From Pelomyxa schiedti (Eukaryota > Protista > Evosea), in the NCBI GenBank assembly GCA_020536535.1, contig JAHLWZ010000636.1:1-64000 (forward strand): a stretch of 64,000 bases of DNA. The letters are read 5' to 3'. The translations under genes and the position numbers were made by a program. Below the pieces are notes generated by a model. That model searched no databases and was not told the origin of the DNA. It saw nothing but the letters and a program-made list of their open reading frames with translations. Shown piece by piece: positions 13,169 through 25,342 of this stretch. Positions within the stretch are counted from its first letter, which is position 1. Each line of letters begins with the position of its first letter.

Positions 13169-13590
13169 TCGAGTAACATGCCCAGGACCAGCAGTTTCAG
13201 CCCAGGCACTGCTTAATAAAACAAAAATTATATAGGGGTTCAACCGCTGCGAGCATGTTAAACAAGAACAAGAAGAAAGGGGAAAACCTCCGAAACTTTC
13301 GAATCAACCAAAACACCATAGCTACCGAAGGTGCTGTTTGACAACGTGAGTTCCCAAGCTTTTTAATTGCGGTTAAAAAGAACCAGGAAAGCGATAACAA
13401 ACCAGACTCCGAATTAACAGTCGCCTTCACTTCCCACACATTACGGCCAAGTCGCAAGCCCGGTGGATTCCAATTTGGTAGCTCTTGGACCAACGACATA
13501 GTTATTTTTTTTCGTTTTTGCGAAGCCCCAACAGCCAAACTGTGTTCGTCTACAAACCCAAGTTGACTCAACGAATTCGGCCAAGTTGAT

Positions 13591-15587
13591 ATGACCCAAT
13601 ACACGCCGTACCTGACGAACGTCACGAAATGGCACTTCTGGCCTACACCACAACCATCACCAAAGACTCTTTCTTTGGCACCCCCAAGCTCCACGCCTCC
13701 GACCAAGACCAACAGTACGACGTCAGAGTGCTCTACAACAACAAGCAGTGGTGCTACGAAAGTTGCATCTCAAACTCAACAGGTTAGCATTAATGAGCCG
13801 CAGCACGCACAACAGCAAAGTGCAAGTGCAGTTGTAGTATCAACAGTCAAAGGTCCGCCTTATGGTGATGCTTTCCCAAGAGGTTCTCCCATAGTTACTT
13901 TTTTTTTTCCAAAAACAAATTGTTTGCAGACAGTCAGGTTCCTGCAAAGATATATACACAACCACAGCCACGACCACAACTGCAGAACTCCACAGCAAAA
14001 GATTCCGTCAAACTGGACTTTGAAAATCGTGCGGCAGCTCTGGAAACAGAAAATGTCACATGCAAAGCCTTGGTAGAAAAGCTCAAGAAAGGTCGCAATG
14101 CTGTAAGAGACATTCTCACTTCATTCTCAAAGCTACTGTAGATCTTGAATGTGAACAGCGTGAGCATAGAGAAACGCGTGCAAAATTGACAACTTCGGAA
14201 AAGGAGAGGAAAAACGCGGAGGAGAACTTGGAACTTCTGAGGCAGTACTATGAAAATGAGTACAACAAAGTGAATTCAGATTTGAAAGACGAAAAGGCAG
14301 CACATCTCAAGACCAAATGTGAACTAAATACCCTGGCAGAGCTCAAATCGGTTGTCAAAGCTCAAGCCACTCAGATAACATCTTGGGAAAGACGCGTGTT
14401 ACAAATCGGTGCTATGCTTTGTAAGACAGAGGGTACAATCACGACTCTTCAAAAAGAGAAGAAGCAACTTGAAACTCTTGTACAGAATCTATCCAATAAA
14501 GTACTATTCCATCTCTGTTGTACCCCACCTCAACCCGAAAAAAGTTTGATACTCTCACCCAAGGACTGGTTGATGTGTTAACTGCGAAAAGGGAACCATC
14601 ACCTACTCTGTTATTTGCACAAGAATTGACAACAGAACCAACCGCACCACAAACACCGCAGCTGCAACTACGAACGCCACAACCGCAACCTACACCACAA
14701 TCACAACCTCAACCTCAACCACAAACGCAAACGCCGGAACTATCAACCAAACCTCAAGCACAACTGGTTGAAGAAGTTCCAGCTATACCACAAATTCCAC
14801 AAGTTCAACAAACACAACGCGACCAACCAGCACTAACACCTGAGAGGCCAATCCAGAGACCCAACAGTCCGCCTCCTCTCCCACAATCACCGCAGCCACA
14901 GCCACAGCAACAACAATCATCACAGCCACTGTTTCAGCAAAAACTACACCAACAAGAGCCACAAAATCAATCTCAAAGCTCAGTTCAACCGTCTAATCCT
15001 CTCGCGGCACTGGAAAAACCTCCGCAACAAATTTCTTCCTCCGAATTGCCACCTTTATCTGTAATCATATTTTCAGATAGCACTCTGCGATGCCTGGCAC
15101 TTTTTTGTGTATGATCCCGACCCTTCTATGAGTACATTAAGAACTGACGCACATAGTCTCAGCTTAGAGCCTGTCTCCCTCGTGTAGAAATTACCGTGGG
15201 GTGTCGGGATCAAAACATAGTTGAACAAGTGTCAAAAAATAGCCTTTGCATTTACATAGAGGATTTTGAAAATGCTTCACTTAATTTTGGTCCAGTCTTC
15301 AATTCTCTTTTTAGCAGTTGCCGTACGTACTGCTTTTAGTAAAACAATGGAACTGACACTCTTCTGCAGAAGACAAGCTCATTATTGTACTTATGAGGCA
15401 CCACCACCAAACATTATCATTCCTACCCCTTCCAAAGCCAGTATGGGCACTCATCCACAGCACCACCCAGAAGAAAATGCTGTCCCTGTGTTACTACGAG
15501 ACTTCTCCGGGTGGTGACTACTCTCTGCAGGACAACTCGGATTCCGAAATTAGTGCTTTTGCTTCGGAGCTCTCCAAAAAAGAATAA
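13591..15587 (+). CDS. Gene A: coiled coil, Gln/Pro-rich linker and uncharacterised C-terminal alpha/beta domain X
   Basis: ORFs 13591, 14060, 14518 and 15393 joined by GT-AG introns; ends SQLRACLPRVEI...SLCIYIEDF...QDKLIIVLMRHH...KMLSLCYYE...SKKE stop 15587. Confidence 0.65.
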
Positions 15588-15770
15588 AACAAGATAAATG
15601 AGTTCAAAGTTAAACTGTTCGGAAAAGAGTCACAAATCGAAGGTGTGGCCTTGTGTTGAATACCCAGTTACCTGGACCAACCAACTTCGTCAATTCGGAT
15701 CTTTCTCGTAACCGAGAATGAAGAAGAAAAAGACAAAGAAGTGTAGTGTTTCAACGCGCTCGCTTGAGGG

Positions 15771-16883
15771 ATGGAATTCGAGGAGGCAGAACTTTTTGCA
15801 GCACCAGTGCAACTAGGAATTCCGCGGTTCAATATCATTCTTCTTGGACCGTGAGTTACCTCTTCCACCAGGCGTTTCGTTCGACATTAATGACACGAAA
15901 TCCCTCAAGGTCAGGAGCAGGGAAGAGCAGTTTGATTAACTCCGTGGCAAGTGCGTACATGGGAGACCGGGTGCATGAATTCGCAACTCCATCGTCACAT
16001 TACTCCGTCCCGATGACAACTCGCCTCATGCCCTATGACCTCGACATTCTCACTGAGGGCAGAAGACCGGTCACTCTATGGGGTATTTTTTTTTTTTTTT
16101 TCATTTGTGCCTGTCAATTCCCTTCTTGGAGGAGCTGAATTGTTGTTGGCAGATACTTGGGGTCTGATAGCAACAAAGTCACCTTCTCCTCCATCTTACT
16201 GTGGTGGGGAACTGGAGTCAATGATTTTGGGTACTGCTTCTGTTGGTACAGATGGCTCTACTCATCCCTGTCAATTGAACACTACGTTTGAGATGACTGC
16301 GCGGCGAGTATGCATTTCCCTCCTTGGCCTTTCAGTCATTGATCCTTCGGCAAGGCCCACTGTATCATATTTGTGGTCGCTGTCCATGATCTCACTAATA
16401 GTGAAATGCTCGATGCATTTACGAGACTGTATGAGAAAACAATGGGTGTGCAAACCGCTTGTGTGGTGCTATACATGTCTTACATTAGCTTTCTTCAAAG
16501 GAACTCCCAGTTTGGTTTTATTGAGCCACGTTGACGAAATTATTTCGAACTTTCCTTTGCTTCCCACTACAGAGCAGTGTGAGACTCTTCTTACCGATCC
16601 TGCTGTCAAGAGCAAGTTGTCTGAATTTTGTACTCTATGGAAACTTCCCCCAAAGGATGTCTACCCACTGATCAACAATTTCCGGTATGATGCCAACCAG
16701 GTTGTCAACAAACAGGCCCGAACTATTCTTCTGGCCGCCATGCAACGTGCAGTTGATCATTTGCTTGTAATCAAGGAGCATAATGAGAGGCCTGCTGAGG
16801 AAAAACAACCAGCACAGCAACCTGACCCTACACCTCTACGAACCATAAAGGTGTCTCTAATTGGAGGCCGAACTGGTTGTTGA
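15771..16883 (+). CDS. IFI44-like P-loop GTPase 1
   Basis: RFNIILLGP-SGAGKSSLINSVASA, DTWGL, GELESMILG, LVLLSHVD, KDVYPLINNF, LLAAMQRAVDHL follow the IFI44/IFI44L GTPase motif order. Confidence 0.8.
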
Positions 16884-16956
16884 GATAATGAATGTAGTAA
16901 CAGAATAAACAAAGTTAGAACAATGTTCCATTCAATCTTTACAGTGTGGGTTTCTT

Positions 16957-18131
16957 TTACGGTTGCTCCAGACAGGCCACTGTGTGAACAGGACCATAGA
17001 ACAAGTATTCTCCAGACCGCAGGTATTGGTTTTTGCAAACCATGATCATGTCAGAGGCCTTTTGTATGGCGCGACGTAGAGCCAGTAAAGGCCACACTTC
17101 TAGTTCACTGTTCTTTGTGGTTGTTGTGTAATTTACAACAGGAAATATATCTCGGCGGGGCAGATTCCACACTCGACTTAGGTGATCAAGCTTCTCCTGA
17201 ATCAGTGTACTTGTACCAATTAATTGGGGGGAGGAAGCAACTCTCTCATCTGGCGCTCTGTAAAAAAAAAAAGACTTGAAGAACACGTATATACCTAATG
17301 TGTCACAATGTGTGACAATAAAAATGGATGGTATCCCTGCCATTTCGAAGTCAATTAAGGTTAGGTGATAGTGTGAGTACCTAGTCGACCAGGGTTGTCA
17401 AAAAGAGTGGGTTTTGCCTGATTTAGTGCTGAAGGATTTGGTATCTCTGATGCCGAGATAATAAAAATTACACAGTGTATCTATAAAAAAAAGTTGGACT
17501 AAAAAAAATAGAAAGCCAAGATAAGAACCCTTTGTTGTGCAATCCGGGGATCCCTAGCATCAAGGAGGTGACTCTGTGGGTCATCGTTATCCCTCGTGTA
17601 AGCGGTCATATTCCCATTGAGCATGTAGTCTAGCTCCTCTCTTCTGTAATTGGAAGAATCCAATCCCCAGGTGTCTAAACAGAGTTGAATTAGATATTCA
17701 TCCATATATTCTGAGTTGGTATCAAACCCCATATCCGCAGTCTTGGTTTGAAGTCTGTGTCATTAAAGAGTTGATATGGACAGAAGTCCCTAGATTCGTG
17801 TGCAGCTGTACTTGGTGCTGTGGGTGCAAGTTCCCGCACTGAATGAGAAAATGCAGATGCCAAGGTATTCGCTGTACTAGATTTTCCAGCACCAAATCTT
17901 TGTAGACGGCAACGGTTAGCCAAGTATGTGAAAAGGAAAAAGAGACAACAAACGTTCTCCATACTTTCCAAAAAGGAGGATGTTGAAAAAATCGACCACA
18001 AAGATATCCCGACAGGGTGGCTTGGCAGCACAGATCTCTCGGACAAGAATGGCAGTAACTTCTTCTTGAGAAAATGATGGTGTAGATTCCGTCGACGACG
18101 TTGTCACTGCTGTCGTAGAGCTCATTGCCAT
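16957..18131 (-). CDS. IFI44-like P-loop GTPase 2
   Basis: FNILLFGK-FGAGKSSTANTLASA, DTWGLDSSNYRREELDYMLNGN, IHCVIFIISA, IFIVTHCD, RDIFPVVNY, LALRRAIQKASD. Confidence 0.85.
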
Positions 18132-18212
18132 TCTACTTCGTGGTTTACGGAAAAAAAATTTTAACTGAAAAAAGCGAAGCAGCGGGTCAAGTTGGTTCAA
18201 AAAACCAACTTC

Positions 18213-19506
18213 CTAAGGCAATGATTTCTGTAAGGCCAAGAGGTCTTTGCATAACCGAGCGATTTGATATTGGCAGACAGGCTTCAGTGGCTCGTGAGGC
18301 TCCATATAATTAAGTGAGTACACCTTGGGCTGAAAAACCCCATGTTGTTCTATTCCACTCAATAAAGAAGCGGGGGGGTTAATCCAGAGACACTCGTGCT
18401 GATTCTGCCGCATTCCAACAATAACAAACTTTTTCCCTGGTTTTTTTTGTTGTTAGTGGTGTCAATGAGTTTTTGAAAGTAACCATAAGTTTTGACAAGT
18501 CTATTCATGGTTTCTCTTAGTGCAGGGTCCTGCACATCAAGCCGGCAGGTGGTATGTGGCACTACATAAAGACAAACATTAGCTGATGATGCACAGTCAT
18601 GTTTGTTGGATATCATCTCCTCCAGTGTACAGGTTGAGATATCCAAATGTGGTACATCAGCTGATAGCTGATCCTGCGCAAAATAAGTAGTCGTAGATTG
18701 AGCACTGCTTACTAAGAAGCCAGGGATGTGGAGCAGAAAATACTCCTTTGCGAATGCTACCACTTTGAAGGAAGCTCTAACATTCTGAAGTTCTTGGAGG
18801 TGCTGAGACTCAACGGGTAGGGAGAGTTCTGTGATGGGTTCGTTTTTTTGTTCATTTCGTGTTTCGGTTGCGGCTTGAGAGGTTTAGTGGAGTGAAAATT
18901 AACAGGTTCTATACCAGGCAGCAGATATGTACAACTTTGCCCCTCAAAAACGCGTTGGGTATAAAATTTCGGTTCCAAATACTGAATACACTGCCCTGAA
19001 ACTGTGCCAAAGGGCAGTCAGCACAAATTTGTGATTTATTTGCTTATCGAGTACCTTCTCTTCTCATCTCTGGAAAAGACAGATAGCAATTAGAATTAGC
19101 ATTAAATTAATGGATACATCTTTTCCATGTCATGACTGTGTATAGAGGCTGGAACAGGGACCATACCGCAGCCTGGTGTGGCCTTTGTGGTGCCCCCAAG
19201 CTCACCTGTTTCAAACTCACTAATATGGAGTCTCACTCCTTCGACAAGGTGCCTAATCTTTTTTTTTTTAACCAGAGAATTCGTATGTTTGTGGTTGGGG
19301 ATGATGGGATCAACCCTGTCCAATAACGAACTTGCTGTCGCCGCGGTAGCGCTGAAATCCAGTGCTTCCAGATTCGCTTCGACCACGTCACGTCGGCCCG
19401 ACAGCTGCTCAATTCGTGCATCCAGATCCCGTGCATTCTTCTTCATTACCGTCACATCATCCTGCAGTGCATTCAAGTCATCGGAAACCACCTCCGCACT
19501 ATGCAT
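18213..19506 (-). CDS. Gene B: N-terminal coiled coil and the same domain X as gene A
   Basis: MHSAEVVSDDLNALQDDVTVMKKNARDLDARIEQL (heptads); spliced C-terminus QDQLSADVPHLDIS...NVCLYVVP...YGKKFVIVGMRQ...KVYSLNYME; stop 18213. Confidence 0.65.
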
Positions 19507-19626
19507 GCCGATTAACAAGCAAAAATTCTACTGCCCTCTACGGCGCCGACACGGACAACGGTTCGATTCTCCCAAGTTGGGCCAGAAAAATAATTCAGCA
19601 AAAGGATTTACTATTTCCTCTCAAAG

Positions 19627-20757
19627 TTATGAGGTGGAACCAAGTAATTCTACAACGTGCTGTCGTTCAGGTGCGGATGTGACCTCCCGAGTGACACCAG
19701 GGGTTGGGGTGCTAATAACGGGTTCTGTGGGTTCTGGAAGCTTGTATGAAACTTTGCTGTGCACCTTCACAATGTGGTCATTGGCACGCTGTAATGCGTA
19801 GTGTAGAACGGCGAGGACTGAGGCATCTATGTGCTCGTCCTTGAGCTGCCGATTCCAGTATGAAGCTACGGGAAAAACATCCCGCTTGTTCAATACACAT
19901 ATACTGCGGAAGCTATTCCGCAGTTCTTCAATCTTGGGTCCCCAGATTTTTGAGGGAAACGATGCTATTGCTGGGTCTGGTGGTGATTGTTTTGGTGGTT
20001 AGAGTTTGAATTTAAACCTGCCTTTTTATTAATAATAAAAAGCGGTAAACCTCTGTGGTCCAGATGAGTTAGAACTGCAATTATGGGAATGGATAAGTCA
20101 TGTGCCTCAGTGAAAAATTGTGTCCACCACCTGTTAAGCTCTTCAATATTTTCCATATCATGAGCTGATATAAATATAAGCAAGCAGTGCATCTGAGTGT
20201 CGTGAGAAAACTAGATAAGAGTGGCTGTAGGATAGTGACCTTTCGTTGCAATTCTTGTTCTGGAGGGCAAGTTGGTTTTTTGACGGAGTGCTCTTTGTCA
20301 GTCTTCAATGTGCCAGGGGTAACTAACCCCCGTAGATAAGATTTAAACGTCTCCCCTCTGTAAGAGGTGCCATCCTCACCCCAGCAGTCTATGTAGCCAG
20401 AAATGAAGTTACTAAGTGCTCAAGTCGGGTACACAAACCCCAAAAGCGGACAGGAACAGGGAATCCAAGCCGCGGGAAGTCATAGTAGTCCATTGCTGGT
20501 GTGCCAATCTTAGAGGGATGGCCGCTCGTCGGACACAAGTATCTCACAGTGGGGCTAAATGCTGTGGCAACAGCATTGATGAAACTACTTTTCGCTGCAC
20601 CCCTTTTTCCTGTACAGAATAGGCGTTAAGTTGCAGACAGCGAAGGGGAAAAAAAAAGGGGGAAATAAACACCAAACACAGCTATGTTGTAGTGAGGGCA
20701 TCCTTTGCGATCGAGACGCTGAACGAGCGAAAAGATGTCGTTAACACCCGAACACAT
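19627..20757 (-). CDS. IFI44-like P-loop GTPase 3 (variant Walker A)
   Basis: YNIAVFG-KRGAAKSSFINAVATA, DCWG, MHCLLIFISA, IAVLTHLD, RDVFPVASY, LHYALQRANDHI; stop 19627. Confidence 0.8.
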
Positions 20758-20914
20758 TGGCAGTTTTTGGTTTTTGTTGCAGTTTTGATTCAGGTTCCGA
20801 GTTGGTGGGCGAAAAAGCCAAGTTGGACTTTTGTGGGTCCAGTTGTGGCGAGTGCCTTTTGAAGAGCTAACCCCTTGATCATACACAACCCTCGCCACAC
20901 TAGTCTTGCATAAT

Positions 20915-23032
20915 TCATTGGTTTTTCTTTTTAGTCTCTGTGTGGCTGGGTGTGACTGAAGCACTTACGACGCCGCTTCTGTATAGCCACCTTTGGTACA
21001 TGTATATTATGAAAACAATGTCTGGTTGGGGGGTTAGTGGAGAGTGGGATGGTTAGTGTTGCGGTGTACCGTCACGGAAGCAGCTCATTCTGTGCATTGT
21101 CGGCATCTTTATTATGAAAGCAAACAAGTCATCTATAAATGTATTCAGTGCCTAAAAGAGGCTTAGCCATTGTATTTGGTTTGGTGTAGCTACTTTGTAA
21201 ACAAGTGCTCTCCATGGCAAGTGCTCCACTGATTTTAACTGTTGTTTAAGAAAATCCATTGGTACTTATATTCTGTGAGTATTTTTACCTTGTGGTTAAT
21301 AAAAAGTTGAGGCGTCATCATTATGAACCCGCATGCATATGCTATACTTGTCAGGCTGCAAAGAGACCTTAAGTCATTGATATGGTTCCCAAACTCCAAC
21401 CTCTCTAGAAGCCAGGAACACCAGCCCTTGTGTCGGGAGAAAATAAGAGACCAAGACGAATACCCAATAATCAGAGGAATCAAAACTAATAGCATTACAT
21501 GAAAAGCCTTCGTATCTTCAAATAAGGTTATTGGTCAAAATATCTCATAGTACAAACCAGCTTCAGATGTCATTTTGTGTTGTTTCTGTTCCGCTTCTTC
21601 AGGCCGCAGGTTTTTTTTGGATTGTGTGTAACATTTGAAAAGCTTCCATATGTCAATTATAACAGATATTCCAGCAGGAACAAGTACTAAAAAAAGGTAC
21701 ATCTCATTACTAATTAGGTTTTATTATATTGGATACCTAACAAACTAGTTTCATTCTCATATAAGTAGGCCAGGATGACTACCCTAAACAGAGCATTGAT
21801 AATGACAGATCTCACTGACACCTCACCGATATCATTAATTGTGGGATTGAAGCGAAAGTACCCCCAGTAAGGAAGACAAATTCCTCCAGTAAGCAATGTC
21901 GTTCTGAAGCTTCAGTAAGAAATAAAACTCGAAGTTGGATATTACCCGAAAGGAGAGTATATCAAAGATGATGTGCAGTAGAGAGACAAAGCCTAAATGT
22001 AGAACATTCGTAACAAAATATCAAAAAACGAAAATACCAATAATAAAAAGGAAGGTAGGGCTAGTTTGAAGGAATATGTGTTTCATATCTTCAGTTTCTT
22101 TATGTGAAAATCCCCATTCCTTTTGCTTGTGGAGTGAACTGGAGAATTGAACAACCCAAGAAAAGTCATCTGGATTCATTCTTTTTATGGTTATCTCTAA
22201 AAAAAGCAGGGTTCATTTTTGCACAAAAGTTGATCACATGTTAACTGTAGAAGGATTGTTCATACCAAGAGGAAGAACAGATACTGTGGAATTAATTTCA
22301 ATCATCTCTTCATAAGACGTTGACATATCAGAAACGTAAATAAGAGGGTGGTAGTGAGAGTCTCGGTCTTCCATTGTGTATGTGTGCAATGGTGAGAGCT
22401 CTTTTCTTGGATAAGAGTGATGGTCCACAAGAACGTAGATGGTGAGCTTTTCAGCTTTAAGACAAATATGGAAAGATACTGGCTAACCTTGGGTTTCCAG
22501 AAAGGTAGTTTTTTGGCACTTGTCAAGTCTGATTTAGTTGGTAGAGGGTCGTAGAGAAGAAACCGCGTTGGAGACTTGGGACTCATAAGCTCTGCGCACA
22601 AAAACTTTGCAGTGGAGATAGGAGTCCTTAAGCTACAACACATTACGTTCTCATCTGGCAGAGAGCACCAACTTATGTGGGAAGAGAGACACACTGAGCG
22701 TAGCCAAATCACCATTTTTCAGTGCCTCCGGTGCGGTAACGTTTATAACGGTGCTGATCTCGTCACTACCAGGGGCAGGCACCTCATAAACAAACGAGTA
22801 ACGCCACAAACGCACGCTAGTATCACGTGACTCCAAGAACACCTGTTTCATGCAGTAGCAAAACGACGCAAGCGAGACCGACAAGATCTCGTACCCTGAC
22901 ATCCAACAAAGCACCCTTTGCAACGGAGTTCCCAATCAGATCTCCCCCTCCATCGCAGACAACAAATCCAGCCCAACACATAACAAACACCGCCGGCAGC
23001 CTGTCCCATGCACCCACCGAATCTCTTTTCAT
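20915..23032 (-). CDS. CLPTM1/CLPTM1L family membrane protein
   Basis: GFIMMTPQLFINHK, EHLPWRALVYK, ALNTFIDDLFAFIIKMPTMHRMSCFRD and DIVFIIYMYQRWLY are the family's conserved C-terminal motifs. Confidence 0.9.
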
Positions 23033-24073: not shown

Positions 24074-24478
24074 CAACGTTAGAAAACGTGGAACGAGAAA
24101 CAACCAAGTTACCTTGGTCATGACCAATTCAAAGCCGGCAGTGTACTGGGGTTGGGTGCTACGAGATGATGTGTGATGTTCTCGAACCCTGCTTCCTTCA
24201 CCAAAGGGTGGGGGCGCTAACGGCCGGTTCGACAGCAAGGCATTTGCAAAAAAGGCACGGCTTCCGCGGCGACGGTGTGACCAGTCCTCCCACAAGACGA
24301 GAAGAAAGAGGAAGAGTGGCCAAAAGGCCAAAAGGCCAAGTGGCAAGCACCTTGTCTCTTTTTCTGACTGTGGGATGGGGGTGTGCCCGCCTGTGCGGTT
24401 GCAGTGTGCCTTTATGCTGCGGCTGTTCGAGTTGTCCGTGTCCAGTCCCCCTTCGAGAGAAATCAGCAGGGTCCAAGA
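24074..24478 (+). ncRNA. Putative structured ncRNA, copy 1 (rod core 24186-24472 plus conserved upstream segment)
   Basis: Nested end-to-end helices with G-U pairs on the + strand; near-identical second copy about 860 bp downstream. Confidence 0.6.
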
Positions 24479-24932: not shown

Positions 24933-25342
24933 CAACGTTAGAAAAAGTGGAACGAGAACACACCCAAGTTACCTTGGGCACATGACATGAAGCAATTCAA
25001 TTTCCAAAGCAGACAGTTGACTGGTGGGCGTTTGTGGTGCTGACCCTCCCGGGCCCTGCTTCCTTCACCAAAGGGTGGGGGCGCTAACGGCCGGTTCGAC
25101 AGCAAGGCATTTGCAAAAAAGGCACGGCTTCCGCGGCGACGGTGTGACCAGTCCTCCCACAAGACCAAGAAGAGGAAGAGTGACCAAAAGGCCAAAAGGC
25201 CAAGTGGCAAGCACCTTGTCTCTGTTTCTGACTGTGGGATGGGGGTGTGCCCGCCTGTGCGGTTGCAGTGTGCCTTTATGCTGCGGCTGTTCGAGTTGTC
25301 CGTGTCCAGTCCCCCTTCGAGAGAAATCAGCAGGGTCCAAGA
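24933..25342 (+). ncRNA. Putative structured ncRNA, copy 2 (rod core 25051-25338)
   Basis: Direct repeat of copy 1; GGGCCCTGCT/AGCAGGGTCC closing stem; T5 run about 25 nt downstream. Confidence 0.6.

Follow-up and report, generated by a model that had tools for sequence, protein, structure and literature searches.

Are the IFI44-like GTPase genes of Pelomyxa schiedti, an anaerobic amoeba, one half of a conserved two-component system, or are they a local gene family that lies among genes of another kind? This question is raised by positions 13591-20757 of contig JAHLWZ010000636.1, part of the 64,000-nucleotide stretch analyzed here ("the window"). From the DNA sequence alone, the original prediction described five adjacent genes: three GTPase genes (G1, G2 and G3) and two genes (A and B) that each encode a coiled coil and a shared C-terminal domain, here called domain X. 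IFI44, an antiviral protein of animals, and IFI44L, both of which the GTPases resemble, are widely used interferon markers, and their biochemistry is poorly understood. In the reading that we consider reasonably probable, the cluster consists of three stand-alone IFI44-like paralogues that lack a TLDc domain, interleaved with the orphan genes A and B, and the facing pairs A>G1 and G2<B are the relic of an inverted duplication.

Five gene units were found in exactly the order and orientation proposed, A(+) G1(+) G2(-) B(-) G3(-) (Table 1). The region is intron-rich eukaryotic DNA, and its open reading frames (ORFs) are fragmented as a result. Genome and single-cell transcriptome data are available for P. 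schiedti (PMC8887013, PMC10579272); the assembly searched here totals 52 Mb and has 5337 contigs. When placed on positions 14900-20899, the RNA contigs from four single-cell transcriptome runs of one study showed 13 GT-AG joints of 41-74 nucleotides (nt), every one of which agrees with the coding frames. Introns of this short GT-AG type (41-74 nt) are found throughout the genes of the cluster. G1, G2 and G3 are genuine, spliced, transcribed genes, and transcripts of all five genes are present in the same single-cell transcriptomes.

Table 1. Genes, exons, introns and domains of the IFI44-like cluster (positions in the window; aa, amino acids)
Feature	Strand	Positions	Remarks
A	+	13591-15587	Partly deposited as Pelo_8092 (P0136)
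A, proposed exons	+	13591-13882, 13930-14102, 14159-14500, 14545-15108, 15157-15322, 15370-15587	
A, domain X	+	15055-15587	Residues ~200-344 of P0136
G1	+	15771-16883	Pelo_8093 (P0001), 293 aa
G1, introns	+	15851-15909, 16083-16152, 16308-16354, 16446-16500	Three are RNA joints; the first is from the deposited model and the sequence
G2	-	18131-16957	P0002, 305 aa
G2, introns	-	17964-17898, 17727-17675, 17528-17481, 17380-17337, 17294-17250	Four are RNA joints
B-X ORF	-	19067-18213	~237 aa from ATG 19067
B-X, exons	-	19067-19055, 19001-18915, 18873-18484, 18436-18213	Carries domain X
B coiled-coil ORF	-	19505-19102	133 aa from ATG 19505
G3	-	20757-19627	~313 aa counted from its own ATG 20757; deposited within P0004 as residues 487-771
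G3, introns	-	20672-20610, 20438-20389, 20239-20193, 20050-19977	20050-19977 seen in three runs

The longest open frame of G1 retrieved "hypothetical protein Pelo_8093 [Pelomyxa schiedti]" (P0001). When G1 was compared by phmmer with 1.84 billion cluster representatives, 112 matches were obtained at E<=1e-3, with G2 ranked best (E=7e-19) and G3 third (E=1.9e-13). All named matches were fish or mollusc "interferon-induced protein 44-like" proteins; one named relative, P0048, has the TLDc-plus-GTPase layout and served as a control (TLD, E=6e-14). Relatives were also found in the amoebozoans Physarum, Nematostelium and Luapelamoeba and among environmental transcripts. The consensus of 52 aligned G domains reproduced the IFI44 motif series GxxGxGKS[ST], DxxG, HC(V)xF, T[KH]xD and PVxNY. 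The series had been claimed for G1-G3 and is present in all three, in the form GxxGAGKSS, DTWG, HCxxxxxxA, [ST]HxD and FPVxNY-like, with the reservation that G3 has DCWG instead of DTWG and an altered P-loop, and that G1 has N in place of the Y of the NY motif.

The predicted fold points to the same family. The AlphaFold2 model of G1 (predicted local distance difference test score, pLDDT, 87.8) gave ten rows against ESM-Atlas with template modelling (TM) scores of 0.72-0.77 over ~250 residues, which take in the entire domain with its long C-terminal helix, and the named clusters were mostly IFI44, IFI44-like and TLDc-GTPase. Against the best-matching solved structures (mitofusin, Toc33/34, GIMAP and EF-Tu) the TM scores were only 0.30-0.47; no IFI44 or IFI44L structure was among the solved chains searched. 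The best PDB sequence match was septin-9 (E=0.01). Exons taken one at a time had no Pfam match, in A and B as in the G genes, and whole G proteins matched only the generic MMR_HSR1, Septin (E=0.003) or AIG1 families, at or below the cut-off; for G2 these were Septin with 17.2 bits (cut-off 26.2) and AIG1 with 16.3 bits (cut-off 27). Among solved structures, and among the weak Pfam and PDB sequence matches, the Septin, AIG1-GIMAP and Toc34 families come closest, a likeness that fits a TRAFAC-class G domain that may dimerise, but their scores are far lower than those of the IFI44 models, and to our knowledge they lack the HC and PVxNY motifs. No other GTPase family matched G1-G3 better, and the assignment made in the original prediction was borne out by sequence, motifs and predicted fold.

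Animal IFI44 and IFI44L share the G-domain motif series with G1-G3 and are their best sequence relatives, but the amoeba proteins are shorter (293-313 aa), only ~20-29% identical to them, and come from a host without an interferon system. They also lack the N-terminal TLDc domain, as had been suspected: just 27-58 residues precede the P-loop, and no TLD match was found in any exon, in P0001 or in P0002, so that there is neither room nor signal for it. The idea that A or B provides a TLDc in trans was rejected, as neither gave a TLD signal at E<=10. Membership of G1-G3 in the wide IFI44-like family, without the vertebrate IFI44 architecture, is well supported.

By column comparison with the 52 relatives, every near-invariant residue is retained in G1 and G2. 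Because these include all such nucleotide-binding residues, G1 and G2 are most likely switches or assembly proteins that depend on GTP, as would be expected from their animal relatives. In G3 the P-loop reads GKRGAAKSS, with Ala replacing the Gly before the Lys that is found in 44 of the 52 relatives, and G3 may bind nucleotide poorly, given this substitution. All three proteins have [ST]HxD as their G4 motif, with His where most relatives have Lys (TKxD).

Pairwise identity among G1-G3 is 30-36%. In a quick maximum-likelihood tree the three proteins formed one clade together with two environmental sequences (Shimodaira-Hasegawa-like approximate likelihood ratio test, SH-aLRT, 87). Their introns also correspond. 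In each of the three genes, the Asp codon of DxWG is split by a phase-1 intron, and a phase-0 intron comes just ahead of the HC motif. G1 and G2 have two more introns in common, one of phase 2 upstream of the P-loop and one of phase 1 within the Gly codon that precedes the [ST]HxD strand; G2 and G3 have one common intron after that strand. Judged by sequence and intron positions, G1-G3 are old local duplicates that form a lineage-specific paralogue cluster, in which G3 would be an additional local copy.

As far as is visible, A is one gene. Its 3' part corresponds to P0136 (344 codons), which maps exactly to 14414-14500, 14545-15108, 15157-15322 and 15370-15587, and introns 15109-15156 and 15323-15369 are RNA joints, consistent with the P0136 exons. 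Upstream of 14414, open frames linked by typical 44-56-nt GT-AG introns lead back to the ATG at 13591. The product would have an S/T/P-rich N-terminus, a coiled coil of ~170 aa, a P/Q-rich linker and the C-terminal domain X. In the RNA contig of run X1, there is an extra A in the A6 run at 15228-15233 (exon 5 of A), while the contig of a second run equals the genome. Either a homopolymer error or an allelic difference would explain the insertion; a real insertion would move domain X into another frame.

The gene structure of B is less simple. A word search found no deposited B model among those of 96-304 aa, and B was compared exon by exon. In the part that carries domain X, introns 19054-19002, 18914-18874 and 18483-18437 are RNA joints; the coiled-coil ORF upstream gave weak coiled-coil hints in Pfam (E 0.04-0.12). 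One RNA contig is spliced at 18914-18874 and 19054-19002 and, by depth arithmetic, is continuous over 19055-19196. Since there are stops in all three frames between 19110 and 19067, the RNA of this contig has an X ORF that begins at ATG 19067 and a coiled-coil ORF that closes at 19102. An intron of 67 nt (GT-AG, 19136-19070) could join the coiled coil to X in frame and is not seen in RNA; the RNA contigs leave 19300-19499 uncovered. The coiled-coil ORF may be a small gene of its own or may form the 5' part of B, and a single B gene with coiled coil and X is possible but unsupported. Thus, the claim that A and B each carry a coiled coil holds for A, where it is long, while in B the coiled coil is split from X by stops in RNA. 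Within B-X, a MAFFT alignment also showed a resemblance between MISNKHDCA...VCLYVV of the main exon and MRQNQHECL of the last exon (18216-18434 and 18485-18620, minus strand), which may be an internal repeat or chance.

Do A and B share a domain at all? Their similar C-terminal regions span ~145-170 aa, with only 17 of ~70 aligned residues identical. In BLASTP of A against B the last exons did not align, and the preceding exons gave E=0.09; apart from one 47-nt intron the introns of the two genes do not correspond. These facts would suit a reading in which A and B are unrelated orphan genes that came to lie between GTPase paralogues, their similarity and the coincident intron being due to chance. 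Smith-Waterman scores against 20,000 shuffles argue otherwise, giving p values of 0.0027 (last exons), 0.017 (preceding exons) and 5.5e-4 (summed scores), and among the nine exon pairs tested the two collinear pairs gave the two best scores. The 47-nt intron has the same position, phase (1) and length in both genes and lies in the codon directly before the aligned strand DKLIIVLMR (A) or KKFVIVGMR (B). We therefore think the unrelated-orphan explanation unlikely. Because the C-terminal similarity is collinear and the same intron interrupts the same aligned codon, A-X and B-X are probably distant paralogues, and the shared C-terminal domain of the original prediction survives as a shuffle-test signal with a common intron that BLASTP does not detect. 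Domain X itself had no match in Pfam, PDB sequences or the Atlas, and an AlphaFold2 model of the B main exon alone was unusable (pLDDT 37).

Given that G1-G3 form one clade with shared introns and that A and B are probable distant paralogues, a single inverted duplication is plausible: one ancient event, copying a segment with an X gene and a G gene, would have produced A>G1 and G2<B. Arrangement, G clade and A/B paralogy are thus in keeping with the inverted duplication first proposed from gene order, while no DNA-level repeat, inverted repeats included, is left in 13400-21000. Several points weigh against this reconstruction. The closest pair is G2-G3 (36%), so that more than one order of duplication is possible, and the tree came from a quick, unfinished search in which the interior of the clade is not resolved. 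The A/B similarity is below significance in both BLASTP and hhalign, B allows two gene structures, and the first 820 bases of A are without support from RNA or a deposited model. Moreover, the RNA comes from a single study of unchallenged cells and is available as contigs only, from which transcript ends and levels cannot be read.

The same arrangement could instead reflect a true two-component module, in which each X protein binds or regulates the GTPase encoded just downstream and selection holds the pair together; A and B, with their coiled coils, would then be scaffolds or adaptors, as judged from adjacency only. In favor of this, order and orientation have been retained in both pairs while the proteins diverged to ~25-30% identity, the spacers are short (183 nt from A to G1 and 81 nt from B to G2), and all five genes are found in the same transcriptomes. 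However, if both pairs stem from one duplication, they count as a single observation of adjacency and there is no independent replicate. Short spacing is also usual at this locus, as ~157 nt separate the neighboring CLPTM1-family gene from G3. The genome at large offers no second case. Six-frame searches of all 52 Mb with the X exons of A and B and with a two-row profile returned only the exons themselves, so that no X genes exist elsewhere whose linkage to IFI44-like genes could be followed. A search with G2 found at least nine other IFI44-like places, and at six of these loci (~49 kb in total) no A/B coiled coil or X lies alongside (best E=0.41). Fusions to X or to a coiled coil of the A/B kind were absent from all 125 relatives checked. 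The conserved GTPase-plus-partner system of the original prediction is therefore not borne out. A co-fold of G1 with A-X scored 0.00, with the fold of A-X itself uncertain, and is not evidence either way. We regard the module as a tentative possibility that we do not favor, and functional pairing of A with G1 and of B with G2 as correspondingly doubtful; a defence role of the locus could be proposed by analogy only.

A different relation between the two kinds of gene would follow if X were a degenerate IFI44-like G domain without a P-loop, making A and B pseudo-GTPase paralogues of G1-G3 within one expanded family. The intron that A and B have in common is similar to one that occurs in both G1 and G2: each of the four has phase 1, splits a Gly codon (Gln in A) and stands two or three residues ahead of a buried strand with a helix in front of it. 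Around this intron, RETMNRLVKTY-G-KKFVIVGM of B (strand DKLIIVLM in A) is comparable with DAFTRLYEKTM-G-TPSLVLLSH of G1. The best hhalign register, obtained with the B main exon (E=0.07), places VCLYVVPH...RETMNRL on IIFVVAVH...DAFTRL of G1, as does the best Smith-Waterman register, and local alignments match A-X to residues 123-186 of G1 (p=0.019) and 119-221 of G3 (p=0.03), with SFLPLPKPVW against SFPSKIW; in the hhalign and A-X local alignments the introns are no more than one residue apart. Against this, the other hhalign comparisons were not significant (E=0.2-0.55), hidden Markov model scores fell inside the shuffle range (p=0.1-0.3), and two of 15 pairwise tests were under 0.05. The best register of one B exon (B3) with a narrow profile conflicts with the other registers, X is ~100 residues shorter than the G domain, and no usable fold is available for X. 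On balance this origin of X is improbable, and it is slightly less probable still that each unit is an active GTPase with a coiled-coil pseudo-GTPase partner pairing through a G-domain interface. If true, pseudo-GTPase partnering would be an ancient, pre-animal regulation of IFI44-type switches.

The inverted-duplication relic among IFI44-like paralogues thus remains our preferred reading, and within it the cluster differs from its relatives in the same genome. Other IFI44-like genes of P. schiedti and of other amoebozoans have the same G domain (23-36% identity in six-frame matches), but compared with the other P. schiedti copies G1-G3 are domain-only proteins in a clade of their own with the two environmental sequences, and have many introns, while several of the other copies are matched over long open frames. 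Compared with six other loci, only this one has neighbors of the A/B type. Our literature search turned up no paper on amoebozoan IFI44 relatives; public gene models already include these proteins. Stand-alone amoebozoan relatives without TLDc show that the IFI44 G domain is older than animals and suggest that it can function when TLDc is absent, and proteins of the G1-G3 type would be small, simple subjects for biochemistry and structure. Should the X genes be true partners, they would be the first genome-context candidate interactors for the IFI44 family, as a hypothesis only.

The deposited model that contains G3, P0004 (771 aa; span 19630-23032), joins it to the CLPTM1-family gene (Pfam PF05602, E=4e-66; 23032-20969, minus strand). 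The join is a 250-nt intron (20968-20719), while all other introns here are 41-74 nt, and it bypasses both a stop in the CLPTM1 frame near 20915 and the G3 ATG at 20757, from which translation gives an N-terminal helix resembling that of G1. The RNA contigs do not reach 20300-20899. Given the oversized intron, the bypassed stop and an own ATG with a G1-like helix, G3 as the tail of a CLPTM1 fusion was set aside, and the fusion in P0004 is probably an annotation merge.

Some minor observations concern the ends of the RNA contigs. At 16245 in G1 and 20118 in G3, inside coding exons, contigs run out into template-switch-oligo sequence (GAGTACATGGG and its complement); these ends probably stem from library artefacts or from fragmented RNA and are not true transcript starts. 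Contigs of two runs both stop at 19624, three bases beyond the G3 stop codon, with the ATG of the next ORF ~120 nt further on, which reflects either very short 3' untranslated regions or a common contig break. Elsewhere in the window, two near-identical translated stretches were seen at 24183-24293 and 25056-25160, as chance tblastn matches.

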